The notes beneath the pieces are model-generated. The model did no database searches and had not been told where the DNA came from. It worked only from the letters and a program-made list of their open reading frames with translations. From Bugula neritina (taxonomy: Eukaryota > Animalia > Bryozoa): 64,000 nucleotides of DNA. Positions 4,772 to 63,471 of the stretch are shown here, one piece after another; within the stretch, counting starts at the first letter, position 1; each line of letters starts with the position of its first letter. Where the stretch lies: the NCBI GenBank assembly GCA_964035545.1, contig OZ037772.1, positions 7,796,889-7,860,888 of the forward strand, read 5' to 3'. Made by a program: the position numbers and the translations under genes.

Positions 4772-11703
<6,932 letters not shown>

Positions 11704-12826: not shown

Positions 12827-18940
<6,114 letters not shown>

Positions 18941-39885: not shown

Positions 39886-41469
39886 GTTTATTTTTTTCTG
39901 CACATTAAATCACGAAATTTATTTAATTTTGTAAAAAAATCAACAAATAAACAGCTACTTTACTGCATTTAGATATTAATTAGCTGAAAAAAAAAGCTTG
40001 CAATTTTAAAACTATTTTTTATCTGAAAAAAAAATAGTCATAAAACATAATTTGTGTTTTTCAGTCAAGTTTCTTTGATAAAACACAAGTAGATAATAAG
40101 ATGTAAGTTAGTTTGCAATTTTTTAAATTGATTTTCAAATATAAAAGAATTGAGTTTAGCTCTCACGTTCCTTATTTCTTGAGGCAGAATTTTCAGTAAT
40201 TTACAAGCCTTAAAATTTATTACATCTAATTTAAGAGATTCTTCAATTTCTATAATTAATCTGACTTTTTCATAACTTTTTTGCTTATTTATGTTGCTGA
40301 GAATTGGATTTGCTAATTTTTAATGATTAATTCACATGCTGGAAACAGTAAAACTGCTACATTAATTCACCTGCTTGATTACTTTTATTTTTTTTATTAG
40401 CATAGTGTAATATTTTCACAAACTGGAATAAAACTTCCGCTAATTGTTGAGCTGTTATGACTGATCAAAAATCACTTATCTATTTTTTCAACAATATAAC
40501 ATTCTACAAAAAAATCTTCAGAATAGTTAAAAGTGTTATTGTATTAGGTTAAAGCTGTTTGAAGTGCACTGTGAAATGTGTTTCACATGAATTTTGTTGC
40601 GTTATTATAGCGGAGAAGCTTTATTAACTTCAAAGCTCTAATAAATCTTTAGGTGGAGTTGCTGTTTAAGCTTTTTCAAAAACATTTTTTCTAATACATT
40701 TATTTTATAGAACAAAAATTTTTATTAAAGTTTTAACTGCTTCACCTGCATTGTAATATCATATACAGGGCTCTATACGTAGTTACATAACTCAATATAA
40801 TATATAGAGAAAAAGTTATTTCAATAAAATTAGGTATTGTGAATAAAAACCTCAATTTTTTATTATTAAGCTGAACTTAACTGCAGCGATATCTCGCTTT
40901 TCTATCTTATTTTTTTTTACAATTCTACAAAAAAATCATACAGCATGGTGATAACCCTACAATTTATTTAATAGACACACAATGGAAGATGTATGGTAGA
41001 CCGTCTCAGTCAAAGTAATATTCAAAATAGCATGTTTAACCCATTTTATAAAGATATGCTTTCGGAATTCTTGTTAAAAGACTTGTGTAATCTTTCATTT
41101 ATCTATCTTCATGTATCTTTCTTTTACAGGAAACACGCTGTATATCAGTTGAGATTAAATCTTCAAGGCAGCGTGGATCAAATAGTGGTGAACAAGACTA
41201 ATTCTAAATAAAAAAAATTATTACTATAAATTTATAATTATAATCTTAGTAATTTATTTTGAATACATTAAAATAAAGTAACATATTATAATGCATAATC
41301 GTAATTATAAAGAATAATGATTATTATTTTAACTAATATAGCATTATTACTAGTATTATAATTACTATCTTATTTTCATAACTTAGCAGAATATATTAAA
41401 CAAATTAATAATAATAAACATATGATAAAAATAACATTAAATAACATAAATAGTATATCTATAATATTA

Positions 41470-44208
41470 CAGTGAAATCTCTAGTTTTTAGCTATTTTTC
41501 ACAATTTAGCTGCTAATAAACATGGATTTTTAGCCAAAGCTAGTAAAATATCAATAAATCCACACAGTTGGTTTAAGGTCATTACTTTCCAGATTCAGGC
41601 ACTGCTTTATGTTATATATAAACGGTTTCCAGGGGATAGCTCGAACAGTTTTTGTCTCACATTAACAAATTTTACATGAAAAGATAGCTCTTGCATTCCT
41701 CTTTCATATACTTTTTTAATTTTTCAATAAAAGTTTTTTGAGAAAGTTGTTGCATAATAAGTAAAATTTTACACCCTCCATGTTCCACTGCTGTAGCACA
41801 GGGGATTCATTTTATAAAGTATAAAAGTTAAACTTGACATTCCTTGATATGTTTTCTCTAATATACTTTCTTTGTTTTTTAAAATTCTGTTTATGCTCTT
41901 CACAATTTGGTAAAAACATACACCGTTTTGCAAGTTTCACTGCAATTTTCTAAATTCTTCATATGGTGGTTCTAGCTACGCTCCTGTGACTAATTATAAC
42001 ATTCCTAGTACGTTTGCCGCTCTGCGCTATCACAATAACATATAGTACCCTCTCGCACAAATTGGCAGTCTATTGGATTTCTGCCAATATAATGTTCCCT
42101 GTTTTACATTAGCACTTAGCTGAATCATCTCACTATGTTACAATAATATATTGAAAATGCCTCAGCACAACATAATTCTTTGTTTGTTTGGCAGAGTTAA
42201 TTTCAGCTAAATCACTTCACTTTGCAGTCTTGTCAGTAAAGGTCTGTCTATAGAGCAGCAGGTGTACTTTCAGTTTCTCTAATTCACATATGATTATTTT
42301 AAGTACATTGTATTCTATAAGATCAATTTAAGGTTTAGTCCAGTGTTCAGTATCTAATTATTATGCTTGTATGTTGTCTTACTGTTGAACAAAAGTTAAA
42401 AAAAACTTTACAATTATAGCCATATTTATTATACATGCGTAGGATTTGCATAAGTTGACAAAAAAAATTGCGACAAAACAGGGTTGAACCATAACCAACT
42501 AACTCCTCGCTGACGCCTCTAACCTCTAGACCACGCAGTCATCGTTAATAAAACGCGCACTATATGAGTAACTATCATTACATAAATATTTCGCGCAGAG
42601 TTTGCAGATGTGCTCTAAAATGAAACTTAAACTGTATGGTATTACATAAGTATTTGTATGCGAGAGATAAATGGACATTACTGAGTTTCTGGAAAACAAC
42701 ATACTTGAAGTTAACTTTGACAATGGTGTGTTATTTTCATCATACACTAGCACAGATAGGGCCTATAGCATAAATCTCTAATCATATGAATCTTTATGAA
42801 GCCCACAGCTCATGTAAGGGTGGCAAATGTAATTTGAAACTAAAAATTGTGTTGCTGCATTGTGTCTAAGGTATATTAGAGAGCAGAATTTGGTTTTACT
42901 AGCCTACCCCAACGGCATTCTACAATGCAGCTTATATGCTGGCAGTTGTAATAAGTACTGTCAATAGCAAGGTTACTATCACTGCTAGCTCTGTGCAGTA
43001 TGTAACCTCTTGAATAATTGCGCCAATTTTAAACTCTTGGAAGTTGGCCAAGTTATCATATCGCAGCCAGCCACCGGAGACAAAGCATCAGAGCTATTCA
43101 TATAATATTATACTGATGCACTTGGTAGCAGAGTGGCTAATCTAATATAGTTCATAGTTCAACACCCTTTACTTTGGGAATACAGCCTCTTTTTTTAGGT
43201 TTACCTTACAAAGCATGAACATATCTAAACTGATATTCTGATAATTTAGAGGTACATTTTGAAAACTAGGTTAATTGCACTTGTTTGCACAACAACAATA
43301 ATAAAATAGATATTATGCAGTATAATAAAAACACACATAATACTATATAATATATTATAATGATAATAATATAATATTATAAGTACCATTACTGCATTTT
43401 ATAAATCACATGGTTGCCAGAAAAATGTATCACAAATTTTGTAATTATACATCAAAAATAGAACTATAGCTAGGCAGCGGGTTAGAATAGAGTAAATTTT
43501 TAAAACATGAAATCATGATTTGACTATTGTTTTATTTAGGCCAACCAACCTAGGAATACAAGATTGGGTTTTAGCTGGCAGTTTATAACATTTAGCTTTT
43601 GAGCCAGCAGCACTGGCACTTGTGAAGTATAGGCAAAGTTAGTGAAGCGAGACTAACTAGCACTCAAATACAAGGCATATTGAGACGCAATAACAAGTCA
43701 GGAGCGTATAAATTGAAAAGAATGTGGAAGGGGGACTATGTTTTTCAACAAGCTATAACTTAAACATGAATTGGTTTTTGAAAAAAATAAAAAAGTATAT
43801 TGGAGAACATAAGTTTCTTTATCTTTTCATATTTTTTTTGTTCCTGTGACATTCAACCTGTTCGAGCTATCAGTGGAACATTGTTCATATAGAACATAAA
43901 GCACCTGGCAAAGAGCCAGAAAATGAAAAGTGTGACCTTAAACTAACTGTGCACCAAAAAAATCAAAATTATTTTTAATTTTGCTTGATTTCCCATGTTT
44001 TTTTTTAATGATTCTAATGGAAAAATCGTAACGATCCGCAATCCACATTAGCTATACAAATAGAACGAAACATGGAAATTCTAGCAAAATTAAAAAGAAT
44101 TATGATTATTTAGGTGTATTTATTGATATTTTACTAGTTTGGGGCAAAAATCCATGTTTATTAGCAGCTAAATTACGAAAAATAACTAAAAATCAGAAAT
44201 TTCCAGTG
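41470..44208. mobile_element. Non-autonomous DNA-transposon-like element with long imperfect TIRs (or two inverted repeat copies)
   Basis: 41470-41660 (..tttagctgctaataaacatggattttt..tagtaaaatatcaataaat..gatagctcgaacag) is inversely repeated at 43858-44208. No transposase ORF inside. Confidence 0.65.
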
Positions 44209-44265
44209 TTTATTAATTAAATAAAATGACCCATAATAAATTAACAGTCATCATTTTGTCCTTAC

Positions 44266-47200
44266 AAGTCTAGCATAGACTCCTGTGTCATCATATTTCA
44301 TCTGCCCTCTATTCATGGAGAAGTTTATATAATCTTGATCATTATTTTTAGAAACGTACTGCTGTCTCCCATGAGGCAAAGAGGTAGACTGAATACAAAA
44401 ATAGCTATTTCATTATTTCTATAAAACTTGCAAGATACGTACAGAATGAAAAGACTAAACAAACAGAATGAAATAGTTTAATGGGCTTGGTTAGAATTCA
44501 TGTGTAAAATGAGATTTTTCTTACAAGACTTGCATAAACCCCCGAGTTGTCAGCCGTCATTTGTTTTGAATTTACAGAAAATGTGGTATAATCTTGGTCA
44601 AATCTTTCTTTTTGTTGAGAGGGTGTCTTTGCCTTAAACGATAAACATAAAAATTAGAGTAAAACATTAATGCAAAACAACTAGAATTTAAATAAAACAA
44701 TTAGCATCTCAATACCAAATAGATTCTATTTTTTATCAAACTAGCTTGAACTGCTATAAGTTAGTATACTAAGGCATCATACTGATTATGGATAATTTCT
44801 GGTTGTCAAACTATAGGACAGTTATTACAGACTTAAAATTTCCGTTGCCAATTTGAGTAATTCAAGCGAATTGTAAATATACATATATGTTTTCCTCTAT
44901 AAGATTCTGACAAAGATTCAAATCATTCTTATAATATACGCTTGCAACTTTTTTATTTGCTGTTGAAATGTTTACCAACAAATATCATATATTTATAAAA
45001 GAATACTAAATTCTTTTAAAATTATATAATAAATAATATAACTCTTCTTTTTCGGATAAACTCTTTTTTTCTAAATAATACAAAAACTATATAAATGCAT
45101 TAATTTGATTGCAAGAATATAGCATATAGTGTGTAATGCCCTGACATTAATTTAGCTTATCACTGGCTGCATTAATTAGTGCAAAAAACTAGATTTGAAG
45201 GAATTTTTCAACACGTTATGTAGGATATTAATTGACTTGTTTATTGTTTGCAAAAGTACTTAGCTATTCCTTAATTAGGCCTTTGCTTTGCTTTGTTTTT
45301 CTGAGTTTCCACTAATATAATTTTAATGCATGCGCATGACTCTAAATTTAATCCAGTGTGACAAAATTGAATTTAATGCAGTATTTCTAAGTGAATATAA
45401 CATATTTGCTTAAAAGTTAAAGATTGTAATTTATAATACCGTTTTAGGGTATCTATAATTTAATCTTGTTTTTCTTATTCTATGTGATCATAGACTGACA
45501 AACCTAAACCTATATTGGAGAGCTGAGGTTACTCGGTGACGCCAATGGTGTAATTAGTTAGCGTAGCTGCTAGTAAGCTGCAGATACTGAGTTTGAATCT
45601 CAGTGAGAGCAAAACTCCCAAAAGTTATTATATTACCTTTAAAACCAGTATAATTTGTTTACCTATTATAGTTTGTTTGCTAGAACTTTATTAAATACCT
45701 AATTACTTAATTACTTTTAAAATTTTAAAAAATGCTTACTTTGTTTTTCGGAGAGTTCAAGTTCTTCTGTCTGCTGTGTTCTAAAAAAACAAAATAAATT
45801 AATTATCTAATTTTTTCCAAGATCAGTAATTTTTTTGTATATTTGTTAGTTAAGCTTTCAGCTGGAAAATATATATGAAGTTTGCTGATTGCAGTTAACT
45901 AAAAGTTGTGTGCCGATTTTTAGGTATTTTGCGAACTTTTTCTAAAAAAATTGTGGCACCAATAAATTGACAAAAGAATAAAAACTGTAAAACATATATC
46001 ATTAAATTGTAAAAACTTTGACGGAAAATACAAAACTACAATCAGAAGGTAACACTGTGACTGTGAAAAAGAAAAAAATCATTAGGTTATCTTATTAGTT
46101 CTTCAACTACACAACATGTAATGGTACATTCGGAGTAATCTTTTATCAGTTTAAAAGCTAATACTTGCAGTCGCTTAGAGCATGTTAATGATTGGCATGT
46201 GTTAGCAGCTACTAATATAACTAAAATCATTATAGAAGCAAATCTTACTGCAAAAAAAAATCATTTGAGTTTAGGCTGGTAAAAATAGGCCACAATAAAA
46301 ACCTTTTATTAGTATAAGGAAGCATATAAATTGTTATGATATTGAAAATGTATCCGTATGTGTTTATGTACACTCGTTTTGGTAGTGCCTTAATTGCTAC
46401 ACTACCAATATACTACAATGGAAATATAGAATAAAATTTTAGGTCAGAACGAAGCCTGTATTTTTATTCAGTGGTTCTTAGTGTATAATGAATACCTCAG
46501 TTTCACAATGATTTTACTGCACTGCAACCTTAAAATTATTGAATTCCATTTCGGTGCTTTTTGTGATGCGTTGAAAAACTGAAGTTTAAACTTTCTTTAA
46601 AATTTAATGTGTATATTTCTATATCCGTTAAGCTTATTCATGAAAAAATCTCATTAGATTAAAAAGGGTATGTATGACTATCAAATGGTCATTCTTAGTT
46701 TTATGCAGCTAAACAACTTACTTTGTCGTTCGTCTTTTATTGATGCTCCAGATTCCTGAAAAAATTAGCATTTTACAAAATTCAGTTTAAACAACTTTTT
46801 TTTATTTAGTAGTTATATATAAAAATGACAGCAAGTTACAATGTCAATATTTGTTTTGCTTTAATTAAAGTATTGCTTTTTTTAATTTAAGTATAAGTTT
46901 TATCAATATCGTTCTTTTTAATTTGATAATCGATTATGTAATTGGCAGCTAAATGTAAAATTTTCTTAGTAAAAGTACTAGTATTAGTAGGCCTAAATCA
47001 ATTATTGTATGACAAATTGCGCTTGTAATATACTATTTTTTTAAAGATTGCTATTGCCATTTGTTTTTATAAATGTAACACCGCAGCAGCAGTCAAAATT
47101 GAAACTATTTTGTTAAGAGGCTGCAGCCTGAATTCCTAGAAGTTATAGATCAGTTTCAGAAATAAAAACAGTCACATGTTAGGCCTAAAGTCTAACCATC

Positions 47201-50200
47201 AGTGACTTTAAGTGAAAATTGGATAAGAGTATAAAGTAAATTAAGAAAAATTGTTCAAATGGTCAATAACAACATTATACAAAAACATTCTTTTTTCTAT
47301 AATAATAATTGATTTACTACAAAATTAATTATAAAAATTGTACTTTTTTGGAAAAAATATTTTGGGTTAAAATTAATAAGAACATTTATTACTTTGCAAC
47401 TTCAAATACTCTTTTATAATGATGCAGGCATTTTTTTATATTTTTCATTAAACAATTAATATCTACAACATTGCAATTAAATTAATATAGTAACACTTAC
47501 TGGGGTACCAGCGCGCCACTCGACTGTCGCCATATCAGAGGGTTTCATTCTCTTGCCCATAGCTTGCACTTGTCGCTCTCCTACAGCAAATTTACAATAT
47601 TTCATATCTCAAATTGGTCAGGTTACCTAACTTTAGAAACACTATAATTATATATCTCTAGTTTTTTAGTCTTTTTCACAGTTTAGCTGGGATTGTATAT
47701 AGTTTCTTGAAAAAAACTGATGAAATATTGAGAAAAATGAGTGAAGAATTATTTTTCAATTTTGCCTAATTTCCTGCATATATTTCATCCTAACTTCTTA
47801 ACAAATTTGAGTGTGCGGAGCGTTGCGAACCAGCACACCCGAATTTACTATAAAATTGGAATAAAAGCTTTTAACAATCGAACATTAAAAAAACTGGTGT
47901 TGTTTTTTTTCAATTAATTGCTTCTAGCATGTATAAAAAACACAAAATAAAAAAAAATTAAGCGAAGGAAAAACGTGAGTACAAAAAGAAAAAAACAGAA
48001 GGATAATATTCAATAGCTTGTATTGATTAACTACATGATGCCTTCCCTGCGAGAACATTTAATGGGCGAGGGTTTTTAAAAACCCCATGAGAATTTTCTT
48101 GTTGGCGATAAACAATTATTAATAAATGCTGCTTTTTGTGCCTTACTAATCACCTTTATATTAAATAAAACCACTTACTAGATTTTTGTTAAGCCAGCGC
48201 TCTAACCTCTAGGCCATGGCTACTTTCTAATTAAAAATTCTCAAAATCAGATAAATAATTATGCAATAACAGTTTTTCTGTATCACAAACCTAACGGCTC
48301 TTAAGCTTATACATATTCAGTTGCCTATTACTAGCATTTAAATACAAACAGGTTTCAGTTTTACTACTTACTTTGAATTTTCTTTTGTCTCAGAAGTAAA
48401 AGTATTCCTGCCATCATGACTAACACAATTATAATGCTTGCTGCAATGATTCCATCATTATGGGTTTTATCAGGTGTTTCAGGTACCTCAACGCCGGTAG
48501 TTGTCGTTGCTGCTGCTACAGTGGTTGCTTTCCTAGTGTTAGTATGAACAGTAATAGTGGTAGTTGGTTTTGGAGTGGTTATCATTGATGAATCTGAAAA
48601 CAATAATATAATTTATGAGAATTTTATATTCCAAATATATACTCAAAAGTATAACATACACTAAAGTTCTTGCACAATGTGCGTGTCTGTGTGTTATGCT
48701 TGTGCACCTGAAAAAATTAGCGTAGCTACTTCTTGCCTTACTGTTTTTCATTATTCTGCCTAGCTATGTTTCTTCCTGATAGCAATTATACATGTATACA
48801 AAATTAAAGTTTTCACAGTCAAAATTTTGAAGTGTATTGTAAGTTAATTAATTCCATCTTTTGTTGAAAATTACACAGTTCAAGAACACCATAAAACAAT
48901 TGGTTTATATGAGAATGATGTTCTTTTGTATATACTACAAAAATAAAAGCTACAGCAACAAACTTTTTGTCTGAAAAACATCTTTTTTAACCAAAATTGG
49001 TGTGTAGCGGTAATAGTAAAAGCGATGTTCAGATTAAATAATTTAGACTCACCAGTATACTTCAGTTCATAGATTGTGTAATCACCAAGGATGAAAATTT
49101 TCCATGAATCTTCTAATTTGAAAAGATATCTTGGAGATTTGAATTTGCAAGTAGAAATTGAACCGGATTGGAATTCGACGTCACTTGTTTGAGGAATACA
49201 TATAGTTGAGACAGATGGGCTGGCTAAATCAACCAATCGTAAGACATGGTTCTTGTAATCAGCAAATAGAAATGTCTCGTTGTCCAGAAAGAATAAGCCA
49301 TTTGCCTCTTGTAGTTTTGCACTCCCTAGTGCACCATCGTTGTGTCCAGTACCAGAAATAACGTTCACAGCTGGAGTACTCCAAGTGGAAGATATGCTGA
49401 CAATACTTGTCTTAGTGCTGAAGTACATGAAGTCACCGCTGGGGTCAAAGTTCAGTCCGTAAATTTTCTGTCTTAGATAAAGCACAGTATTAATGTACCA
49501 AGTTAACCCAACTCTCTCAATACACCTGAGAGTTTCCACCACATTCTCATAAAAGTACACTTTCCCTTTCTCTGAAGGTGAGGCAGCCAGTTCAAATGGG
49601 TAGGCAACTTTTGCAAGGCTAAACTCTCCGTCTCTTACAGTTGCGTCATTGCACCCCCCTACTAGCTCGTTCGATATATGATTAGTTCGGTTAACGGTTC
49701 TAATACAGTTATTACCCAGATCGGCAATCCATATATGTCGATTATTGGTAGGGTTTGTAACTATTCCAGTGATATGTCCATACCTTGCATGAAGTTGCTT
49801 ACCTTCTCTGTAACCCTTGACCTTTTTATTTCCAGATACGTAATATATGCTCATAAAGTTACGAGTAGTATAAATACCGTATCCATATACTAACAAATAG
49901 TGTCCTTTGATGTAATCATCTCTTCCTACGTATCGAAAGGAGGGACCGCTCTCCGAAATTTTCGCAAACTGTTTCATTGTCTCGAATTTTTTGCTAAAAT
50001 TAATTACAACCAACTGAGCAAGAATACTAAGCTTGTCTAATTTTTTATACTATATAAAAATATAATTTCTAACAATGCTACCTAATTAACAGCTAATAAA
50101 AAAACTCACACAAGCTTATAGTAGCCATCCCTAAATCGGCTAAGGACTTGTTTAAATAAGGCACAGGAGCAATTATGACTGGATGCTTTTCCTAACATCA

Positions 50201-50755
50201 CCAATGGCCTTTGTTTGGGTTTGAACCCATGACCTTTGTGTTTACTAGTCAAACGCTCTACCCCTAAACCATGGCTGCTCTTTACCTAATTAACAGCTAA
50301 TACTTTCTATACATCATACTACTGTGCACATATGCTGAACGATTTATGTTTGTAGATTTACCTGTTGATTTGGTTTTTGTGAATAACACTTCCATAAGAC
50401 AAATTCCATTGCAGTTTTACCTAAAACATAGTTATTTTATGCTTTATGTCTAATCATTTGCCTAAAGATCAATTTAGAAGATGCTCCTGAGCATGCCCAA
50501 ACATATTTCCTGTTGGAGAGGTTGCGCAACTCGTTGCATCAGTGAGTTACGTTTTGTGTTTCATTGACTGACACAGGATATTATAGGCATACATAACAGT
50601 CATGTGATATGCTATAAATAAGATTTTAGGTGACTAAAAATGTTAGAATAGACATCTTTAAGCTTCAATACAAATATCCTCACAGCAAACTTATATAGGG
50701 CTTTTTGTATACTTACACACACGATGATCACTAGTGTATATTTTCCAAAATACAT
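44266..50755 (-). CDS. G8: NHL-like propeller receptor, TM, tail with duplicated tyrosine-motif exons (final exon uncertain)
   Basis: Exons 50717-50755 (MYFGKYTLVIIVC), 50362-50420, 49053-49993, 48372-48593 (Thr stalk + TM GIIAASIIIVLVMMAGILLLL-RQKK), 47501-47580, 46722-46755, 45740-45780, 44525-44632 (..DQDYTTF..GVYASL), 44266-44388 (..DQDYINF..GVYARL). Alternating phases 1/0 fit at every junction. Confidence 0.78.
50099..50282 (-). mobile_element. tRNA-derived SINE with a 20-bp target-site duplication
   Basis: Minus-strand head gagcagccatggtttaggggtagagcg...gggttcaaaccc (A and B boxes). tacctaattaacagctaata is repeated at 50079-50098 and 50283-50302. Confidence 0.85.
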
Positions 50756-52700
50756 TATAGCTACATTAACTGAAACTGCAACTTATTTAAAAGAAGTGAT
50801 TGCTAATAAATTTCGGGTAGTAATTAAAACATAAAGTTTTCAATCATGAAAATTTCAACTATGTAGAATATTTTCAACTCTAGAAATTAGCACAACGCAA
50901 TATTGTTATTATTTAGTTTCTGTATGTTTCAACTGATAGGATAAGCAGAATATGGAACATAACTTTATTCAGAGCTGTTATTCAAACTATTGAACTTTTT
51001 AGTTAATACTGGTTTTATGAGGTGGGTTTTTTAGATACTCATTTTAGCTTTTGCAAATAACAAAATATTTCAAATTGATTTAAAAATGTTTCATATTTTC
51101 AGAAGTTGAGTTGTATGTTTAGGCGTATGATAGAATGTAGGCTAATTAATTTTCTTCATCTTTTGATACAAAATTTTAATCAAATTTTTTTAAAATGTTT
51201 GTACCAGCCTGTTTGATTATTGATTTTTATATCAATTAACTTAGGCTAACTAGTAATTCAGCAATAGAGTTATCAATTAGCAGTTTTACAAAGAAAATAA
51301 TCGAGCACAGCCTTTGTATATGCATTAACTGATCAAAGTGATAATGTCAAGAAGAAAACAACCTAATAAGAATACTGTTGAAAAATTTAAACAATGAGTG
51401 AAAACAGGTTAGGCCTGGAAAAGAGATATGTCCTATATAGTGATCAACACAGCTAGAAATGTGTTTGAAAAGTTAACTGCATGAAACTAACAGGAGCCAA
51501 AGTTGAAAGGCAGAACAAGAAAGAACATAAAATTTTGATGTAGCAGGCAGCAACTATTTAGCACTAAAAAAACTGGATTTAAACTTCTGACACTTTATTA
51601 TCCTTATCAGACTTTTTCTTTGGGGTTTGGGTCTATTCTGTTGACATATCCAGCTATTGAAACATGACTTCTTTTCACCAATTTCCCTATTTCACATGTA
51701 TAATATGCGTTTACAAAGTCACTGTGCAGTATGGAAAACATCATATAATCCAAAAGCGACCAAATAGTTCCTATTATACAATTAAGTATAGAGTTTCGTC
51801 AGTTTTAAACTAAATTGCGATCTCTTTCATGCTAAGAAAGTGTAAAAATGTGTGTAATAGTAGTTTACCAAACTTCAAACGGGTGTAGAGTAATTAATTT
51901 TAAAAATAATTGTGGTTAGGTTACATGTTCAAATTTCATGGAAAAAAAAATATCAGTATATGTTTACATTATGTTTGCTTTTTGTGTGTAATAAACCTAA
52001 TTCTTCATTAATTTGTGCACTACACTGAGCAGCTTGGAGTTGCATCCAAATCAGTTATACCTATAACACGATTGTATTTCAAAGTTTATTAATTTGATTT
52101 TTTGTTTAGAAGTCATGCTTCCATTGTTGTTCAAATCTGAACCATGGTTTTTACGCCAAAAACGTTTTGCAGTTTTTTAAACATTGCGCAATTAGGCTAA
52201 TGCCTTTCTTAAGGTAGGAAAAAAAGCATTTGCAATAGTTATTTGAGGCCTGGAATTTGTAAATTTATCTGTAATGCAAGGTTATTTAAGCTGCCAGTAG
52301 ACATTTGACACTTATATATTGGGGACATATATTATATTCCAGAAAAGTGCATTTTGGTGAACAATATAAATTCACCTATACACATAGGTAGACGAGATGT
52401 TTAAGCTCAAATGAAATTAAAGTTATAAATATTTTATTTTGTTAGCTCTGTTTCAAAGTTGAGAAAATAAACATTATACAGATCAAATACTGATTTTAGA
52501 ATATGGCTTTCTCAATGATCATCTGTTTAGAATCCTTAGGTTAGATGTCACATAAATGAAATAAATCAAATAAGCATATCTTGTAGATTTTATAGACTTT
52601 GATGACAAGAAGTTGCCCATCGCTGGTTTGCTGAAGCCTCGGCTTTACCTCTCCGGTGTTCACAGGAAATGCATTATATGCCTTGATTGGGGTTTGAGTT

Positions 52701-55700
52701 TTAACGTGGGCTTTTTGCTTTCTCAGATACTGTTGAAGTTAACTAAAGAATACAAATGATCAAAATATACAACATTTACCATTTTCTTATATGTTGATCA
52801 TTTCTACGTATTGACTATTTTTAACCTAAATTTCATAAATATTTTTTTGCAAGCAGCTTGCAGTTTGTTGCAAGACCTTTTTGCAGCATCTATTGAACTT
52901 TTATTCAAATAGTTTTTTTGATTTCTTTTTCAATTTCGCTATAAGATTCTAATTTGCTTGCTTGTACTAAATAGATTGAAATAACATAGTTTATTACTGA
53001 TGCCTGCACTTTTTATATACACAAATATAAACCTGATTGCAATTCCAAAGTATTTGGTTGCATTATTGCAAAATGGTCATAGCGCCATCTTTAATTGTAG
53101 TTTTTTCTACCATAATATATTTAAATGCTGGCTAATAAAACGAAATGGTTCAATATTAGATTAACTCTAATTTGAGACAAGCTACGTGTTAGCTAATCTA
53201 CCACATTAACAACTATATACTTTTAAACACATCAGGTTTTCTTAATTAGTTTGTTTAAATACATCTCACAAAATAGCAATGAATTTAGGCTTCAAAATTT
53301 TTGCAAGAACTTACTGTCTTTGTAGTGCTCATTTTAATGACAGGCTTTTTCTTCACTTTTTTCCCAGGTGCTGGTGCTAAAACCAAAAGTTTTTTCATTA
53401 AAAACTTTGTGTTATATCAAATGTCTCCGTAGCTGTCAGTCAAATATATAAAAATCTTGCGGTAGGTCTGTTTGTAAATTTTGCGAAAACTATTCAGAGA
53501 ACTTAAGCAAAAAATTCCTAAAGCAGAGTTCTAAGAAAAAATATTTCTTAACTTTTTATTATTTAAGCCAAAGTTTTTTAATTAAAACACATTATTTATT
53601 AGGGAATAAACAATTGAAACAAGCTATTTTTCATTGTATAGGATTCAAACAATATAAATAATCAATTATAATTATTAGGTAAAATTATTATTTTGTAAGG
53701 AATTGTTCTTAAATTGAGTAGTTCTGATAATTTTCACTAAATAGAAAATTTGTTATGTAGCGCTCATATTTATTATTTTTACGTTGTTTACTGTGATACC
53801 AGTTATTTTCAGCATAAAAACGAGCTAAATATTTTAGTAGCAGTAAACTGATGATTGCAGTAGGTAAAAAACATTTTAAATTTTAAGTCCATTACACTCA
53901 CAATCAAGTGGAGATAAGTTTTTAGTGAAGCACACTGCGGAACAATTGTAACATGTTATAATATAAATGAAACAATATAGAAAGCAACAGTTGAACAACA
54001 AAAAGACATTTTTCATGTCTAAGACTAACAGAATAAACATTGAATAAATAAATATAAACATAATTTGGATATTTTTAAACAGGTAAAAAAATTCAGTCGA
54101 TGAGCATGCTTGATCTTTGTGTTTTATGATAAAATAACTGAGTTTAATATTATAGTAGTTAAACAATAACTCAATTACTATTGTCTGTTGATAATGATTA
54201 TGTATTAGTAGTAGTCAGGTTATTGTTTACTATACTCATGCAGTTATCTTATATCCTACAGTATAATAATCAGGTAACTCATCAATGAAACATTTTCACT
54301 TGATTCATGAATAAAGGTTAACAACATACTTGAAAAGCTTGGTCCACCCGATACCTGAAACAATAATATTTTGCTAATTAGGCCTCAACTAATATTGTGT
54401 GTATCCTAAAATTTGAGATACGTATTCATATCACATGTAATAAAATATAATATTAATGTCAATAACGCCCACATTTTCATAGTCACCACAGCCCTGTGAG
54501 AAAACCCCTGATGGAATTTTTTTTTGTTAAATCGAGCTAAGAACTTATTCAGATTAGACACAGGAGCAATTATGACTGAATGCTCTTTCTAACATCACCA
54601 ATAGTTTTTGTCAGGGCCTAAACCCATGCTTCGTGAAGTACTAGGCAAACGCTCTAACCACTCAAACAAGGGTGCTACTATATACTATTATCAGCAAAGT
54701 TGATGTTTTATTTTTTTATTCATGATTTCTTTCAGCATATCTTATTATTTGAGTATTCAAGCAGTACATTTTCTAATTTTTAGGATTTGTATAACGTAGT
54801 TGAAAGTTCTCCTGTGCATAATTAAACGTGCATGATTTGTTTTTTATCTGACAAAAAAACAATGCCAAGATAATGCTTTTGCAGCGAACACAAGGCTACT
54901 GAGCCACAGATGCATTAGAAATATAATTGCAATTATAATTATAACAATTATAACTACACAAAGCTCAAGTTATATATGCAAAGATGTTGAATATCTTATA
55001 GTACTATGATTTACTAAAAAAACAGTGTCGATCAAACACCTTTTTCTACAGCCTTAATAAACAAAATAATCATTGTTTGAAAATATATAGGCAATAATAA
55101 TTTCATCATGTTTCGAGCAAATTAACAAATTAAAACAATTTTACAGATTATGATACAATTAAAGTAATTCAAAGGCACATACACGGCTACTCACCTTGTT
55201 GTTGACTGCTCCCACCTGCTGCTCTTTTCCTAAAAAAAGTAAAAAGCTCAACAACACTACACAAAAATTAGCAAATGCATAAGTTTTTACATAAGTCAGT
55301 CAAAAATTCTAAAATAAATTTGTGTGAGTCGATAGCAATTATCTTTGTTAGAACTTTTAAACAAACCCAAAGGTTTTACTAGTGAGCAATTATGCACTCT
55401 TCCTAGCACCACCGGGTTTTACTGGGGGTGAAGACACTGAGTTAATGTTTGTTGAGGCACGAATTTAACTGCGAATCTGTGACATGACAGGTTGTCTTCG
55501 AAAACCTTATACAACTGAAATAGGATGGATATATTATTTCTTCACAAGGATTTATATACAGAATTGCCGTTCATTATTATTACTTACTTTTTTGTATCTT
55601 TTGTCTTACGAATAATAATATTCCGCCCGTCAGGATCAACACACTTATGATGACTGCTGCAACAACTCCACCGGTTTTCTTTTTTTTAGATGCTTCAGTG

Positions 55701-57718
55701 GTTGGCGGTGGTGAGGTGAGAGGAGGGTAATCTAAGCATTAAGTTCTTTGAAAGTAAACAGGAACAACATGATCTGAATATAACTAGTGTTTTACTAGAA
55801 AGTCTTAGTAATGGCTGTCATACTATAACTCTGTTCTCTGATACTCGTGGACTCACGCAAGTTTATAGTTGCTATCCCTGTGAGAGACCCCTGATAGAAA
55901 TGGCTTTTGTTAAAGCAGGCTAAGGACGTATTTAAATGAAGCACAGGAGCAATTATGACTGGATGCTCTTCCTAACACCACCAATAGCCTTTGTCTGGGC
56001 CCGAACCCATGATCTTGTGCTTACTAGGCAAACACTCTAATCCCTAGACCACGGTTGCTCCGTTATAATTAGTGTTTTACATTTATTGACAATAAAAATT
56101 TATTCAGTAAAAAACTTACTCAATAAAACTCATCCAAATTTCAACTTGAGGTCAAGTATACTTAAAACTTTAGTTATACTAAATAATTAAAAACTCAAAA
56201 CTCACCCGTATAACCAAGCGAATAAATTGAATGATCACCAATGATGTAAATTTTCGAAGCTTCTCTAGACGCAACAAAGTTTCTAGGGTGCTCTAGTTTG
56301 CATGTAGCAATCGAACCCCCAATAACACTGACATCGCCATTTTGGAGAAGGCATATAGATGATACAAAGGATTGGGCCAAATCTACGACCCGTAGCACAT
56401 GGTTTTTGTAATCTGTGAGTAGAATGGTTTGGTTATCTAGAAAGTGTAGGTATTTTGGTTTCCGAATTTTTGCACTGTCTAGTGCACCATCGTTGTGTCC
56501 AAAGCCAGAAATAATAATCTCAGGTGAGCTTGCTGTGGCAGAAGATACTCGAATTATACTTGAGTTGGTGGTGAAGTAAAGGTATGCACCAGTAGGGTCA
56601 AAGGTCATACCGAATAGCTCTTCGTTTAAATTAGCTATAGTTTGAATGAACCAGGTTGAGCCGACTAGAAGAAGGCATCTAAGCCGTCCATCGCTGCTTT
56701 CATAAAAGTAAATTTTTTTGCTCTCCGATGGTGATACAGCCATGCCAAATGGATACGCTACTTCCGCAGATGTAAAATCGCCATCTTGTATGCGTCGGAA
56801 TCCCCCACAAACTCCAGTTAGATCACTGGTTATGTTGCTTACGCGATCAAGAGTTCTGAAACAACTGTTATCCTGATCAGAGATCCATATATGTTTATCA
56901 TTTGCCGGGCTTGTAGCTATTCCATTTATATAGCCAAACCTTGACAGACTCTTTCCTCCGTTAACATATCCATCAAGGTTTGACAATCCTCCTATATAGT
57001 GTGGAGTCTTGAAGTCACTAGTAGTGTAAATACCGTATCCAAACACCACCAAGTAATTCCCTTTCACAAAGTCATCTGCCACTATGTATCGACATTCAGG
57101 CCCACCGCTGTTAGTCCGAAATAAAACTTTCATTTCTTCAAATTTAATGCTAAAAAATGAGCATTGATAAATCACTCTGAACTAGTTTGCAATTTTTTGG
57201 GATATATTAGCAGAAAGTTTAAAACAATTTGCATAAAAGCAGTTTATACTGTCCACATTTTATTGTACTCGTTCTATCAGTGTGAATTCATGCAGGTTGC
57301 TTACTGTGTACTGTACAGGCTTACCTATCTGTGTGTGTTTTGTACTCAATATCTCCATAAGTGACATGCCAGAGAAGTTTTCCCTGAAACATTTTATTTC
57401 AACAATTATCATGTTTTTGCTGTTTAAATTTTATGTTTTTGGTCTCTGTTTACTGCCAGACATTTTAATCGACTTGTTGCATCAGGGAATTATTTAAGAT
57501 GTATAAGAGCTTGAATGAAAGTGTTACTTTCATGCTAGGTATTGCATGCTCTGATGCAGATATTCTCTTGTTAGCCAAAAATTGACATTTATTGGTATAA
57601 GAGCTAAAATATTTGATATGCAGGCCCTATTAGCATATACACTACATCAATTTTGAAATAATATTGTTTGTATACTTACACATATGCAAATCACTAATAG
57701 ATAGAGTCGGAATTTCAT
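52701..57718 (-). CDS. G9: NHL-like propeller receptor, TM, tail truncated before the tyrosine motif
   Basis: Exons 57680-57718 (MKFRLYLLVICIC), 57325-57383, 56206-57149, 55588-55731 (TM), 55195-55229, 54330-54354, 53315-53376, 52701-52742 (LTSTVSEKAKSPR*). Homology to the G10 last exon continues in another frame. Confidence 0.75.
54475..54678 (-). mobile_element. SINE, same family
   Basis: Shares cacaggagcaattatgactg..ctaacatcaccaat..aacccatg..tactaggcaaacgctcta with 50099-50282. Confidence 0.8.
55404..55514 (-). mobile_element. Possible decayed Tc1/mariner transposase fragment
   Basis: Translation KVFEDNLSCHRFAVKFVPQQTLT resembles the mariner (A)KFVP/WVPxxL linker motif; short and unverified. 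Confidence 0.3.
55852..56061 (-). mobile_element. SINE, same family (most complete copy)
   Basis: Same core and tRNA-like head (ggagcaaccgtggtctagggattagagtg..gggttcgggccc). Confidence 0.82.
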
Positions 57719-58873
57719 TGTCAACTTGAATAATCTCCTGACTTACAATATTTTTATCATAGAGTTTAGCTAGCAAAACAATACAGTTGCGAATTTGAGA
57801 ATTTCAGTCATGCAAAATATTTCACTTCAATAAAAATAAGAAAAAAAACATTGCTTTAATTAGCCTAATACCTTCATGCATTGAGTTCAAAGTAACAAGC
57901 ATGCAGTTGAATAAAACACATTCACAACTTTATTTTGTCATTTTTAGTGCCAGTTATTTAGAAAACTGTCTTCTTGTATACAAATTTTAAATAATTCTTT
58001 GAAACTTTCTACAAAAACACTAGTTTTTTTTCAGAATAGTTTACCTAGTTTTGACTCAGTTTCTCATTTGTTGATGTTGAGTATTTTTTATAACTTTAAG
58101 ATATTATATTGACTCGGTCCCATCCTAGACAAGAAACCAAACATAAAACAGCTCTGTCATATTTAGTTTCAATTGTATATTATATATATTGTGTATATAT
58201 TATGAACTTTTTTTTGCTGTATCTTATTTGAGCTTTCATTTTTGTTCTTTTTTAGATATCATGTATATATCACGTACATGTTACATCTATGTATATAGTT
58301 TTACCACATTGACATGGCATGTTTAAATATGTATATTATTAAACAGCAAAATGTCTAAATGTAAGTTTGAAGTAGATGTGTTTACATATTTTAGAGTGTG
58401 TCATTGCTTTCTGGGCTTTGGGCCGAATTTGAAACGTTGTTTGAGGAAACAACTGAGCTGCACACTTGCTAAGAAAGTTTATATAAATCAATTGAACTGT
58501 TTGTAATGTGAGGGTTGGGTAGAACCAAATCACGTGATCATCATAATTTAGGTTTGGTTTCAGATTTTAAGAAAATTGGGTTAATACTTTAGGAAACCTA
58601 TGGAGCCACTTTTTAGACAACTCAGTCAAAGCTGTGATAAAACTGCAAAGAATTTACAAGTATTCATAAATTTTTATTTATTGAAATTTTGTTTTAAGTT
58701 GAACATAATACAGAAAACTAAAATATCAATTGTATAGTTTGCATTATAGTAATGCACTGAGTTTGAAAACAAGTTTTTGGGATAGATGTCACATAAAACT
58801 ACCGAAATAAAAAAAAATAGTTTGTAGTATTAAGTAGATTTTTAAATAAAGATGTTTTTAGTCACTGAGGTGC

Positions 58874-61800
58874 TTATAGAAGACTGGCATAAACATCCGC
58901 TTCATCGACTTTCATTACTCCTGTAGTCACAGGAAATGAACTGTACACTTGCTCTTGAACTGGAGGGTTTGCATAATCATGCTCTACTTGCTCAGGCTGT
59001 GTTGAAGGTGTCTATAAAGAACAAAATTCCATCACCCCAAAGTTTTAAATACGTTCTGTTTCAAGCAAATCAAATTTGTTTAATTTATTCAGAAAATTGT
59101 ATCAGAAAAACATGTTTTTCATTTATTTTAAATCATTTCAATTCAGAATTTATTCTAATTTAATGGACAACAATTCAAATAAAAAAATTTAGTGTTTGTT
59201 GAAAAAAATATTTGATGAGCTTTAGGCCTATATTTTATTGCACTGAATTAACTGCTTTTCCATTCAATGAGTTTTATTTGACTTTGTAGTATATGCGCTT
59301 CTCTACAACTAACTATTAATTATTAAACTTATATTAGCTGGCAGCTACATGATCATTTTATAGAGTTGTGAATTTAAACTTTAATTTTTTTAAATAAATC
59401 TTTTTTATTTTGTTTATAGTAGCTATTATAACTATAATCAAATAATGTTATTTCAAGATTTCTGTGTGAAAAATGTGTAGTACACTCATTTATATTTTTA
59501 CTACTTATTTTGCTATTCATTTGCGGAATATAACATTCCAGCTGCTATAATTGGAGGTTTCACCAAAACTTTTAAACTGTAATATTATTAATTAAAAAAA
59601 CTTTAAATCTTTGATAATTCGCACTAAATACATAGATTGAAATGATTTGACTTTGATGAACTATTTATATACACATATATAGAGTTGATGTAGTTAGAGT
59701 ACCTAATTGTATTAATATATCAAGTATTATTATATAAATTGTAAGCTTCATCAGCAGTTAAAAATAAAATAGTTGAATCAAAAATTTAATCTAAGGGAAA
59801 TTAAACAATTGGATAGCAAGCTATACCAACTGTAGTAATTTGCCCAAAAACTAAGAAATAATGTTTAGCTAAAAGTTTTTTGTAGAAAATATCCGCAGTA
59901 TATCAAGTTGTATTAAGTATGGCAAAGTGTCTTAGCCTAAAACTTTTATATAAAAGCTTACTCTGTTTAAATTGCTCTGCCTTTTCTTCGATTTTTTGGG
60001 TTTCTTTTTTTCACCGTCTTGTTTCTTGCGTTCTAAAGAAAATGTTTTTAAAATGTTACAATATTTAAAAGTCAACTTGAAAAACCTTCCTGGCCTCTCT
60101 ACTACTCATTCAGTCTTTAAACTCCCTTGACCTCTCCATACTACTCCGGAATACGCTATTACTACACTTCACTAAAAGTTTAAATAGCTTGAGAAATGGT
60201 TTTTCCCATTAGGATTCATGCAAACCCGATACATCCTCTTTGAAAGCAGGAACACTAACCATTACGCTAATAATTGGCCACAGAGTAATAGCGACACTAG
60301 CATATGCTGATCAATTAAGCTTATTATCCAAATGTACTTGCTAGCTTATTATAAAGACAAAAAACATACCTGATTTTGGCCTGGCTACTTCAGCGCTTGT
60401 CTCGCTGTACCCCTAAAATATTCACATTTTTAAAATAAAGTTTTGTAATTGTTTTAAAAAACCTGGTTTTGTGCAACTCGAGTTGGTAAAGAAATTATAA
60501 CGTTTTGTTCATTTATTTACAATTGTTTGTTATACTCTTCAAACCATTTCCAAACTCATTCTTTAAATTTTATAATTCTTTATATAAAGTTTTTTGTAAA
60601 AATTGCACAGGACCGTACATTTAGAACATGTGGGTTTGAAAAGATTTGTAAATAAAATAATGTTATCTTTTACTAAGATAATTATTAGAAACTAGAAGAG
60701 CATTCAAAAAATATGCAAACATAGGTTTGTGGTATATTATATAATACTCTTATGGTTGACTATAAACATAGTTATTCAAATATTTTTTTTAAAGAAACAT
60801 AAAAGATAAAAATCTAGAGTTAATGGAAGCATAGCGATTGCATATTGTAAAATTTTTGACCAAATCAAAATTGCACACTGGTTCTGTTGCAGTTGAAATA
60901 ATAAAAAAAGCACGTACTATGGTGTCAGCTTGCACTACAGGAGGTTTTCGATGGTTCATTCTGTCTATCGTTGGCTCTACTGTTCTGATCTCTCCTAAAA
61001 GAGATAGTAATAATTTTAGTACCAATAATACTATAGTAAAATTCACAAATATTTATAGTTATTTTCTTGTGAGAGTTTTTATTAGAAATGTTTTTGTAAG
61101 GCATGCTGAGGATTTTTTCATATGAGGCACAGGAGAGAGTATGACTGAAAGCTTTGCCAATGGCTTTTGTTGAGATTTAAACTCGTGACTTAGTGTTTAA
61201 TTAACCATTGCTCTAACCCCTAGAATATGTTGATCCTTTTTCAAGGTTTTGTTATCAATCATTTCTCACGTTTTGAAAGGATTATATTTGAATAATCATC
61301 TCTGTGAGAACCCCTTCAAGATGTTTAGCAAAAGAACATTTGTTGATACATTGATGCCTTCTTAGTATCCCCAATGAGAAAAACTCTGCTAAAATGCTTG
61401 AAGTACCATTTTGTTTTCTATGCTACTCTTGCTCCTTAGCACAGCAACTAATAGTCCTCAAACCAGTGTTTTCAACGGTTGAAAATATATCATTGCGAAT
61501 TAAATTTTTGAGGATCCACGAAAAGCTGGTGTATGTCAAAATGTTGTACAAAACATTTGATTGTCGTTAAAATAGCATCTTTTTTTTCATATGCACGTAT
61601 TAACAAATTTGTCAAATAATTTCACTACTAACCTTGTTTTTCTTTTAGTACAAGAAATATTAAAACTGCAGCAACCAAACTCAGCAAAACAAGGATGATT
61701 GCAGCAAAAATTCTCCCAGCGTTGGTTTTACCAGAACTCCCAGAAGGTGTTGCGGTGGTTGTAGGTACTGCTACAACTAAAATAATAAACTTTGCTAAAT

Positions 61801-63471
61801 AGTATATTTATCTACTCAATAGAAAATGCAATGTTTAAAAACATAGTTTTTTTTCTCTAGTTATGGAAAGAACTTTTGATCTATACCACAAAAATACATG
61901 AACAAGCAAACATATTAAAACAGGGTTTATCAGGTCAAATTTCTGTCTGCAGTACAGTGCAACTTGTATAAGAATAAAAAATTTGAGATCAAAAACTTAC
62001 TAGAATAGTTGAGAGCATAAATCGTAGAGTCTCCTATTATGTAAAGTGTCGATGATTCTCTAGATATGACAAAGTTTCTAGGATAAGGCATTCTGCATGT
62101 ATTAATTGAACCATTTTGAAGCATACTACCATCAGTTTGCAAACGGCATACAGTTGACACAAAAGAGAGAGTCAAGTCTACAACTCTTAGCACATGGTTC
62201 TTGTAATCTGTGAGTAGAATCGTTTTGTGGTCTAAGAAGTGTAAATATTTTGGTTCCCGCATTTTCGCACTGCCTAATGCACCGTCATTGTGTCCGAAGC
62301 CAGAAATAAGAGTCTCGGGTGAGCTTTCCCAGTTGGAAGATACTCGCATAACACTGGAGTTAGTGGTAAAGTAAAGATATGCACCAGTAAGGTCAAATGT
62401 CAGACCAGATATATTTTTGTTAATTTGAGCTATAGTTTGGATGGACCAAGTTGAGCCAACTAGAAGAAGGCACCTAATTCGCCCATCGAGGCTTTCATGA
62501 AAGTAGATTTTTTTGCTCTCTGATGGTGATACAGCCATGCCAAATGGATACGCTACTTCCGCAGATGTAAAATCGCCATCCCGTATGCGTCGTATTTTAC
62601 CGCATGCTCCAGTAAGATCACTGGTAATATTGGTTAAGCGATCAAGAGTTCTGAAGCAACCATTATCCTCGTCAGAGATCCATATATGTCGATTACTACT
62701 CGGGCTCGTGGCTACTCCATTGATATAACCAAATCTTGACTGGCTCTTTCCACCATTAGCATGTCCTCCTATGTTTGACAATCCTCCTATATAGTGTGGG
62801 GTTATAAAGTCACTAGTTGTGTAAATACCGTATCCAAACACCACCAAGTAATTTCCTTTTATGAAATCATCTGCCACTATGTATCTACACTGAGGTTGAT
62901 TGATGTTTGTTGCAAACAAGTATTTCACTTTGTGAAACTTTATGCTACAAAAAAAGTGTTGAATTATGCAGCTTAAAAAACCTTGTCACTATGTTAAGTA
63001 TACATAAAATATCAACACACAGGACAGTTAAGGGCAACCTTTAGCTGCAGCTCCCATACTGAGGTTTGCATTGTAATCATATTCATATCATATATATAGC
63101 TTGCTGTGTACTTTGTTTATGTAGCACCCATAATGAAATGTTAATAGATGATGCAGCCATAAGTGAGGTTGCTGTTTACTGGTTGTAGTTAGATCGTAGG
63201 CTAAACACTTGTAGGTAGGCAACACACATGCTACTCACAGAGCAATATTATAAAAGAAGCTGAACTACATTTTGAAAGAAATTTCTGATATTTTTAGTAA
63301 GGGTGCCCTTAACTATTCTGAAAAGATTTATTTTTAGAAATTTGGCCTGAAAAAAATTTAGCTGTTACTAAAAGTTTACTATCTGCAAGTTGCTCATTGT
63401 GTATAAGTGTACCTGTTGATGTGATCTTTATACAAAGCCCCTCCATCTGTTGCATGCCAATACAGCTCTAG
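58874..63471 (-). CDS. G10: NHL-like propeller receptor, TM, tail with bi-tyrosine motif (signal exon not located)
   Basis: Exons 63413-63471, 62001-62944, 61633-61776 (TM IFAAIILVLLSLVAAVLIFLVL), 60918-60994, 60370-60412, 59962-60032 (Lys-rich), 58874-59011 (..HDYANP..QVYSSFPVTTGVMKVDEADVYASLL*). Exon 1 not identified; it may lie beyond 64000. Confidence 0.78.
61085..61236 (-). mobile_element. SINE, same family, degenerate
   Basis: gcacaggag..atgactg..ccaatggcttttg..ctctaacccctaga matches the family core. Confidence 0.65.

Follow-up and report, generated by a model that had tools for sequence, protein, structure and literature searches.

A spaced tyrosine pair in the predicted tails of bryozoan NHL-propeller receptors: a candidate docking site for tandem-SH2 proteins

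Do the tails of a cluster of predicted bryozoan receptors carry a tyrosine signalling module, and if so, of which kind? The question is raised by a stretch of 64,000 nucleotides of contig OZ037772.1 (the window, with positions counted from its first letter), in which a six-frame regular-expression scan for Y..F.{14}YA.L found three matches, all on the minus strand. Two lie in the gene G8 (G8a, YTTF-x14-YASL at 44525-44590, and G8b, YINF-x14-YARL at 44266-44331) and one in G10 (YSSF-x14-YASL at 58880-58945). These are exactly the peptides quoted in an earlier note made from the sequence of this DNA, each with the 14-residue spacer counted there. The window is AT-rich (31% G+C), and 300 simulated sequences of the same dinucleotide content yielded a mean of 0.023 matches and never more than one, so chance is ruled out as the source of the motif. 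The exons are indeed missing from the open reading frame (ORF) track that had accompanied the window, because their stop-to-stop frames span just 45-52 codons and lack start codons.

We infer that the motif and its surroundings, here called the cassette, act as a signalling module at the C-terminus in one subgroup of a lineage-specific family of type I NHL-propeller receptors. The best explanation available for it, which we advance tentatively, is that it serves as a docking site for a tandem-SH2 protein. This idea, already put forward in the earlier note, gains from the predicted position of the cassette in a C-terminal tail, from position-specific constraint and from the presence of genes for both candidate readers in the genome. 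Against it count the definitions of the tyrosine-based immunoreceptor motifs for activation (ITAM) and inhibition (ITIM), both of which the cassette fails.

Constraint on the tyrosine pair and its spacing

Two genome-wide profile searches for further copies gave ten cassette exons in one receptor cluster, all within C8:7,773,718-7,895,742; neither search found the cassette on other receptor families. Outside G8 and G10, the motif is intact in G11 (YSSF-x14-YASL), in P5 on the plus strand (YASF-x14-YASL) and in two identical copies in P6, also on the plus strand (YATF-x14-YATL). G12 has Ile at the first +3 position (YSGI-x14-YASL), G16 has Glu at the second +1 position (YAMF-x14-YESL), and G13 has lost its first Tyr and gained a spacer residue (FSTF-x15-YASL). 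The spacer is thus 14 residues long in nine of the ten exons (the two identical duplicates among them) and in all four comparable Bugula neritina orthologs, which also keep the Y, F, Y, A and L. The note had named loss of the motif or its spacing in relatives as a reason to abandon its proposal; both have largely been kept.

When eight paralog exons are compared in pairs, identity averages 0.90 at the Y, F, Y, A and L columns and 0.31 at the other 21. Both Tyr residues and the final Leu are invariant in these exons, and Ala stands at the second +1 position in every copy except one. Constraint is focused on the two Tyr residues, the first +3 position, the second +1 and +3 positions and the length of the spacer. 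The consensus reads [D/E]-x-x-Y-x-x-F-(P/S)V..G.hKVDE..h-Y-A-x-L-(V/L), where h is hydrophobic. The flanks had been described as poorly conserved, which is true of the N-terminal flank and not of the spacer, where PV..G.hKVDE..h is partly conserved. The Met reported as conserved before the second Tyr turns out to be merely a hydrophobic position across the family (M, I or L, with Lys in G8b of B. neritina). Between P5 or P6 and G10 or G11, cassettes are 50-58% identical and ectodomains 28-31%.

For comparison across a longer distance we used B. neritina contig VXIV02001303.1 (stretch L012), which is collinear with the window over the G10 tail, G9, G8, the G8a and G8b tails and G7. Nucleotide identity is 70-76%, introns included, with a synonymous divergence (dS) of ~0.4-0.6. 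On this evidence the window derives from a bugulid bryozoan that is closely related to B. neritina yet distinct from it. Since introns align at ~70%, conserved islands were useless as exon markers, and the ratio of nonsynonymous to synonymous divergence (dN/dS), indel counts and splice phases were used instead. The three tail exons of the window have dN/dS values of 0.27-0.32 (dS 0.5-0.8) and not one indel in 363 nt, versus 76 gap openings in 2307 aligned columns of the neighbouring G8 intron, and their splice sites are conserved. Elsewhere, dN/dS is 0.32 in the G8 propeller, 0.15 in the G9 propeller and 0.51 in the stalk and transmembrane (TM) exon. By these measures the tail exons are coding and under purifying selection. 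Within the sequenced individual, the two haplotypes resolved by DNA run X1 (~120x depth) differ at six positions in G8a (108 nt) and three in G8b. Six of these nine single-nucleotide polymorphisms (SNPs) are nonsynonymous, and none of the nine alters Y, F, Y, A, L or the spacing.

Among 1.84 billion protein representatives, searched exhaustively with HMMER, there was one true match, a 45-residue fragment from B. neritina-derived metagenomes that is the ortholog of P5; no cassette was found outside it in that set. Four other matches were repeat proteins and were judged spurious. The best of these, P0006, is a secreted repeat protein of the beetle Diorhabda whose score sums six weak repeats.

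A cassette confined in this way to one lineage, with conservation running through its spacer (Gly at s5, a hydrophobic residue at s7, Asp at s10 and another hydrophobic residue at s14), could also be a 25-residue linear motif or short fold that binds a cytoplasmic partner irrespective of phosphorylation, the Tyr residues serving as aromatic contacts. That no known motif class fits it exactly would suit this view. We consider it improbable. The Tyr-to-Phe change in G13 comes together with a change in the spacer and looks like decay rather than a tolerated exchange. Otherwise, among the eight paralogs and four orthologs, neither Tyr is ever replaced by Phe, a pattern typical of residues whose hydroxyl group is required.

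Known tyrosine motifs and candidate readers

That the motif matches neither ITAM nor ITIM exactly was upheld when both definitions were applied. The ITAM consensus is Yxx(I/L)-x6-9-Yxx(L/I) (PMC9546547), and a broader version allows a spacer of x6-12 (PMC6219719). The cassette spacer has 14 residues, and its first half-site is YxxF in seven of the eight paralog exons and YSGI in the remaining one; the second half-site fits Yxx(L/I) in all copies. Against the ITIM definition, (I/L/V/S)-x-Y-x-x-(I/V/L) (PMC9546547), the second Tyr fails at -2, which is G, D, E or R in 8/8 exons, with Leu at +3 throughout. The first Tyr has S, V or L at -2 in just three of the eight exons and Phe at +3 in seven. 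On these features the cassette classes as a variant of the bipartite tyrosine motifs of receptor tails that stands outside the ITAM and ITIM classes.

CD33 (Siglec-3) offers one parallel: Y-A-S-L is the core of its ITIM, and one cassette site has this same core. The Tyr-to-Tyr distance of the cassette is 18, within the ~18-30 expected of a tandem pair of an ITIM and a tyrosine-based switch motif of immunoreceptors (ITSM). Within CD33 itself, the ITIM Y340 and the ITSM Y358 lie 18 apart near the C-terminus of a type I tail, as do the two Tyr residues of the cassette, and both are required for SHP-1/2 recruitment (PMC10906256). Unlike in CD33, the order of the sites is reversed, with YAxL distal; the residue at -2 is G, D, E or R and not I, V, L or S; and the other site is YxxF, not TxYxx(V/I). 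CD33 also has an immunoglobulin (Ig) domain where the cassette receptors, known from sequence alone, have an NHL-propeller ectodomain.

Binding by tandem SH2 domains has been suggested to span distances beyond ITAM spacing, based on modelling and experiments (PMC12132298), and Drosophila Shark binds the ITAM of Draper after phosphorylation by Src42a (PMC6219719, PMC8092387). Like the long-spaced ITAM of Draper/MEGF10, the cassette places a bipartite Yxx-hydrophobic motif in one short stretch, and in most copies, as in ITAMs, the -3 position of the first Tyr is acidic. It differs from ITAMs in its spacer of 14, in the conservation of the spacer sequence itself and in Phe at the first +3 position.

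Both candidate readers are encoded in the genome. A SHP-2 ortholog at C3:23.740-23.749 Mb has two SH2 domains followed by a tyrosine-phosphatase domain, and one exon matches PTPN11/SHP-2 chains with E = 5e-35. The gene at C7:14.371-14.378 Mb encodes, in this order and on one strand, an SH2 domain, ankyrin repeats, another SH2 domain and a tyrosine-kinase domain; judged by domain order, it has the architecture of Shark (an SH2-Ank-SH2 kinase). The SH2 domains of each gene are split over exons.

Standard substrate peptides for Src and Abl are AEEEEIYGEFE and EAIYAAPF (PMC5876402). The contexts of the cassette Tyr residues resemble Src/Abl-type kinase substrates in having a hydrophobic residue at -1, acidic residues upstream, a Phe three positions after the first Tyr (+3) and an Ala directly after the second (+1) (PMC5876402). 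Under the tandem-SH2 reading, clustering of the receptors would lead a cytoplasmic kinase of this type to phosphorylate both Tyr residues, and the fixed 18-residue distance between them would allow one tandem-SH2 protein to engage both phosphotyrosines simultaneously. Were the SHP-2/Corkscrew ortholog the reader, the cassette would be inhibitory, as is the ITIM/ITSM pair of CD33; were it the Shark-type kinase, the cassette would act as a long-spaced activating ITAM, as in Draper. The YAxL core and the distance shared with CD33 lead us to favour SHP-2 slightly, by analogy. The tandem cassettes of G8 would double the valency.

Phosphorylation of both residues would not by itself require a tandem reader. 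Each Tyr could be read independently by proteins with a single SH2 or phosphotyrosine-binding (PTB) domain, such as Src-family kinases, adaptors or SHIP, with the spacing a by-product. The spacer residues PV..G.hKVDE are themselves conserved, as a by-product might be; YINF of G8b fits the pYxN motif of Grb2-type adaptors, and G13 retains the second Tyr only. Independent sites also share with a tandem site the kinase-substrate-like contexts (PMC5876402). We nonetheless regard this as unlikely: the spacer length is fixed in 9/10 exons (two of them identical) and 4/4 orthologs while the length of the N-terminal flank varies freely, and both Tyr residues are kept together in almost all copies.

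A trafficking function demands similar attention. Most copies stop 1-4 codons past YAxL (with VSKP, VSKK, VTKP, VTP, VRTK or L), which therefore makes the cassette C-terminal; in this position its second motif is like the C-terminal lysosomal signals of LAMP-type proteins. YxxPhi sorting signals, Y-x-x-(L/I/M/F/V), are read unphosphorylated by the mu subunit of an adaptor (AP-2 or a related one), and two of them here would direct endocytosis or lysosomal delivery rather than signalling. YxxF and YAxL are both Y-x-x-bulky hydrophobic, and in all intact copies both half-sites fit YxxPhi, a very permissive pattern. As far as is known, such signals occur singly and have no fixed partner at 14 residues; a single one would suffice, and we know of no sorting signal that requires two YxxPhi motifs at that fixed spacing. 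SH2 domains read the +1 position; the mu2 subunit of AP-2 is not known to require Ala there, nor the acidic residues upstream or the hydrophobic residue at -1. Sorting would also leave the conserved spacer unexplained. On balance we think a pair of sorting signals an unlikely account.

Several observations weigh against the tandem-SH2 docking site that we favour. Besides the departures from the ITAM spacer and half-sites and from the ITIM at the second Tyr, and the fit of both half-sites to YxxPhi, these include selection in the tails that is no stronger than in the ectodomain (dN/dS ~0.3 versus 0.32 in the G8 propeller). Because the spacer sequence is partly conserved, its fixed length could mean a contiguous epitope and not a ruler for SH2 domains. 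The cassette is also dispensable for some paralogs, since it has been partly lost from G9, G13 and G15; G9 and G15 retain only its first half. Finally, expression and the exon joins described below are predictions.

In the same genome, large tandem arrays of exons for protein tyrosine phosphatase (PTP) domains were seen at C6:8.02-8.43, C1:3.96-4.23, C5:1.31-1.51 and 2.14-2.31, and C3:7.6-8.14 Mb, and they suggest lineage-specific expansions of PTP genes. Many small contigs carry intron-less, full-length kinase or phosphatase domains interrupted in frame by TAA or TAG and almost never by TGA (examples are C176:33222-33977, C183:13502-14260, C10:262-966 and C201:57526-58122). This fits a ciliate-type nuclear code, and the assembly probably contains contigs from an epibiont or contaminant ciliate.

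Gene models of the cassette receptors

The three cassette exons of the window are homologous and small, each with a good AG acceptor. G8a (44525..44632, minus strand, as are all exons in this section) has 108 nt and is phase 0 at both ends. G8b (44251..44388 including its stop) is 123 nt with a phase-0 start. In both, CTT|gtaag follows directly after the Leu codon; G8b reads through this donor-like site to end in YARLVRTK and a stop. The terminal tail exon of G10 (58874..59011) ends in YASLL and a stop.

Direct splicing of these tails to the TM exons was rejected. In G8, G9 and G10 alike the TM exon ends in phase 1, and the tail exons begin in phase 0, so no direct join is possible. A splice-phase search located, between TM and tail in G8 and G10, a short exon rich in Lys and Arg whose acceptor is in phase 1 and whose donor is in phase 0, with equivalents in G12 and G16; tblastx among the introns of the paralogs recovered few additional exons. 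In G8 this putative basic juxtamembrane exon lies at 45740..45780. It is the sole candidate with fitting phases and composition, is partly conserved in B. neritina, and is needed because the reading frame closes only when it is included. The G10 equivalent at 59962..60032 (ERKKQDGEKKKPKKSKKRQSNLNR; phase 1 to phase 0) has a conserved counterpart in B. neritina (L012:1013-1084).

The remaining G8 exons are a signal-peptide exon (MYFGKYTLVIIVC, 50717..50755, followed by a GTAAGT donor), which is homologous to that of G9 (57680-57718) and presumably joins the propeller; the ectodomain exon (49053..50013); and an exon for a Thr-rich stalk, the TM helix and a basic stop-transfer stretch (48372..48593), which has a phase-1 donor and is 65% identical to its B. 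neritina ortholog. Assembled, the six exons of G8 give 502 codons with matching splice phases and no internal stop, with the C-terminus …YASL-STSLPHGRQQ…YARLVRTK-stop. For G10, the propeller exon (62001..62944), the stalk and TM exon (61633..61776, phase 1 at both ends), the basic mid exon and the tail exon give 431 codons, again with matching phases and no internal stop.

The TM helices have Kyte-Doolittle (KD) values of 2.9-3.4 and are followed by a K/R-rich stretch. Given also the signal-peptide exons of G8 and G9, the tail is predicted to be cytoplasmic. The products, with one TM helix and a positive-inside tail, have the features of type I single-pass proteins if the exon joins are right, and are predicted to be receptors composed of signal peptide, propeller, Thr-rich stalk, TM helix, basic stretch and a cassette tail of ~75-110 residues.

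These models bear on whether the cassette exons are expressed in the receptors at all, or are relics or parts of another transcript whose pattern reflects shared ancestry. The B. neritina annotation calls the propeller exons alone, as single-exon genes, and decayed copies do exist (in G9, in G15 and after G8b). Yet dN/dS of ~0.3, zero indels and conserved splice sites over dS of ~0.5 are hard to square with relics, as are frames that close across 4-6 exons and a motif preserved across ectodomains just 28% identical. We regard non-expression as very improbable.

Two of the decayed copies lie in the window. Downstream of G8b lies a truncated third cassette (41098..41151; IYSVFPVKERYMKIDK followed by a stop) without the second Tyr. 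It is also present in B. neritina (L012:17474-17527), there with an internal stop, and is an old remnant of a further exon duplication. The tail exon of G9 (52643..52740) is degenerate, with only the first cassette half (AYNAFPVNTGE) followed by a gtaaag donor-like site, and the G9 tail of B. neritina is equally degenerate. Near these copies, a block at 41564-43951 lies downstream of G8b in the window and upstream of G8a in B. neritina (L012:14387-15163). Part of it is 88% identical between the two, well over the intron background; the block probably represents a mobile element or a local rearrangement.

The individual is highly heterozygous at 44200-50100, with many SNPs and short indels across the G8 introns. 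Within 339 nt (46222-46559), the contig of the second haplotype shows differences at 31 positions (about 9%); a skip of 2427 bp (45007 to 47435) in one contig has weak support.

The NHL-propeller cluster

On its minus strand the window contains ten paralogs, each with a propeller exon of ~310 codons. The closest named relative of the G8 exon is a B. neritina 'NHL repeat protein' (74% identity). The Pfam NHL model PF01436 scores 12-14 bits on the ectodomain, below its cut-off of 20. An AlphaFold2 model of the G8 exon has a predicted local distance difference test (pLDDT) score of 92, and Foldseek matched it to the lumenal domain of SOQ1, NHLRC2, a teneurin-like protein and TRIM71 NHL domains with TM-scores of 0.68-0.77 and E-values of 1e-12 to 1e-8 against solved NHL domains. 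On the modelled structure, the fold search settles the ectodomain as a six-bladed NHL-type propeller.

At least 27 propeller genes, most with a stalk/TM exon, lie within 174 kb around the window. The tail exon of P6 and its surroundings are duplicated (C8:7780791-7780907 and 7784223-7784339, identical and 3.4 kb apart) with no second propeller exon between the copies, which reads as a very recent segmental duplication.

To our knowledge, Bryozoa, a phylum of colonial animals, has yet to yield a characterised immune or allorecognition receptor. By analogy, the cluster, being large and polymorphic with TM and tail-less members, resembles paired immunoreceptor clusters and the allorecognition complex of Hydractinia. 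Like the bryozoan cluster, the Alr genes of that colonial invertebrate form large tandem arrays of divergent single-pass receptors, encode domains exon by exon and have variable tails, some with ITAM/ITIM-type motifs, and homologs of Syk/Shark and SHP are encoded in both genomes (PMC9546547). Alr proteins differ in having Ig-like ectodomains, canonical motifs and, for Alr1 and Alr2, genetic proof of function. The bryozoan cluster might be a complex that recognises self and non-self or serves immune recognition, with NHL propellers in place of Ig domains and with short-tailed and signalling members, in which the x14 cassette would be an independently evolved counterpart of the ITAM/ITIM, read bivalently by Shark or SHP-2. 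This is a speculative extension that we think doubtful; if true, it would add a third architecture of immunoreceptor tyrosine motif. Bivalent phosphotyrosine docking, if true, would itself widen the rules of spacing and sequence now accepted for the ligands of tandem-SH2 proteins and attach immunoreceptor-style signalling to a non-Ig ectodomain family. It would also provide a concrete, testable way into the function of the cluster, itself large, polymorphic and lineage-specific, in the form of a 26-residue peptide and two reader genes.

Among the neighbouring genes, the propeller exon of G7 (37917-38921, minus strand) is cut by an in-frame stop into pieces of 127 and 207 codons, so G7 may be a pseudogene. 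Three related repeated-element ORFs (…NPP(Y/F)S…SYSC…CNCR…) at 7756-8505 (plus strand), 15730-16449 (minus strand) and 16317-16616 (plus strand) have no significant Pfam match. Between the receptor genes of the window, (TA)n, (CA)n and longer-unit tandem repeats are abundant.

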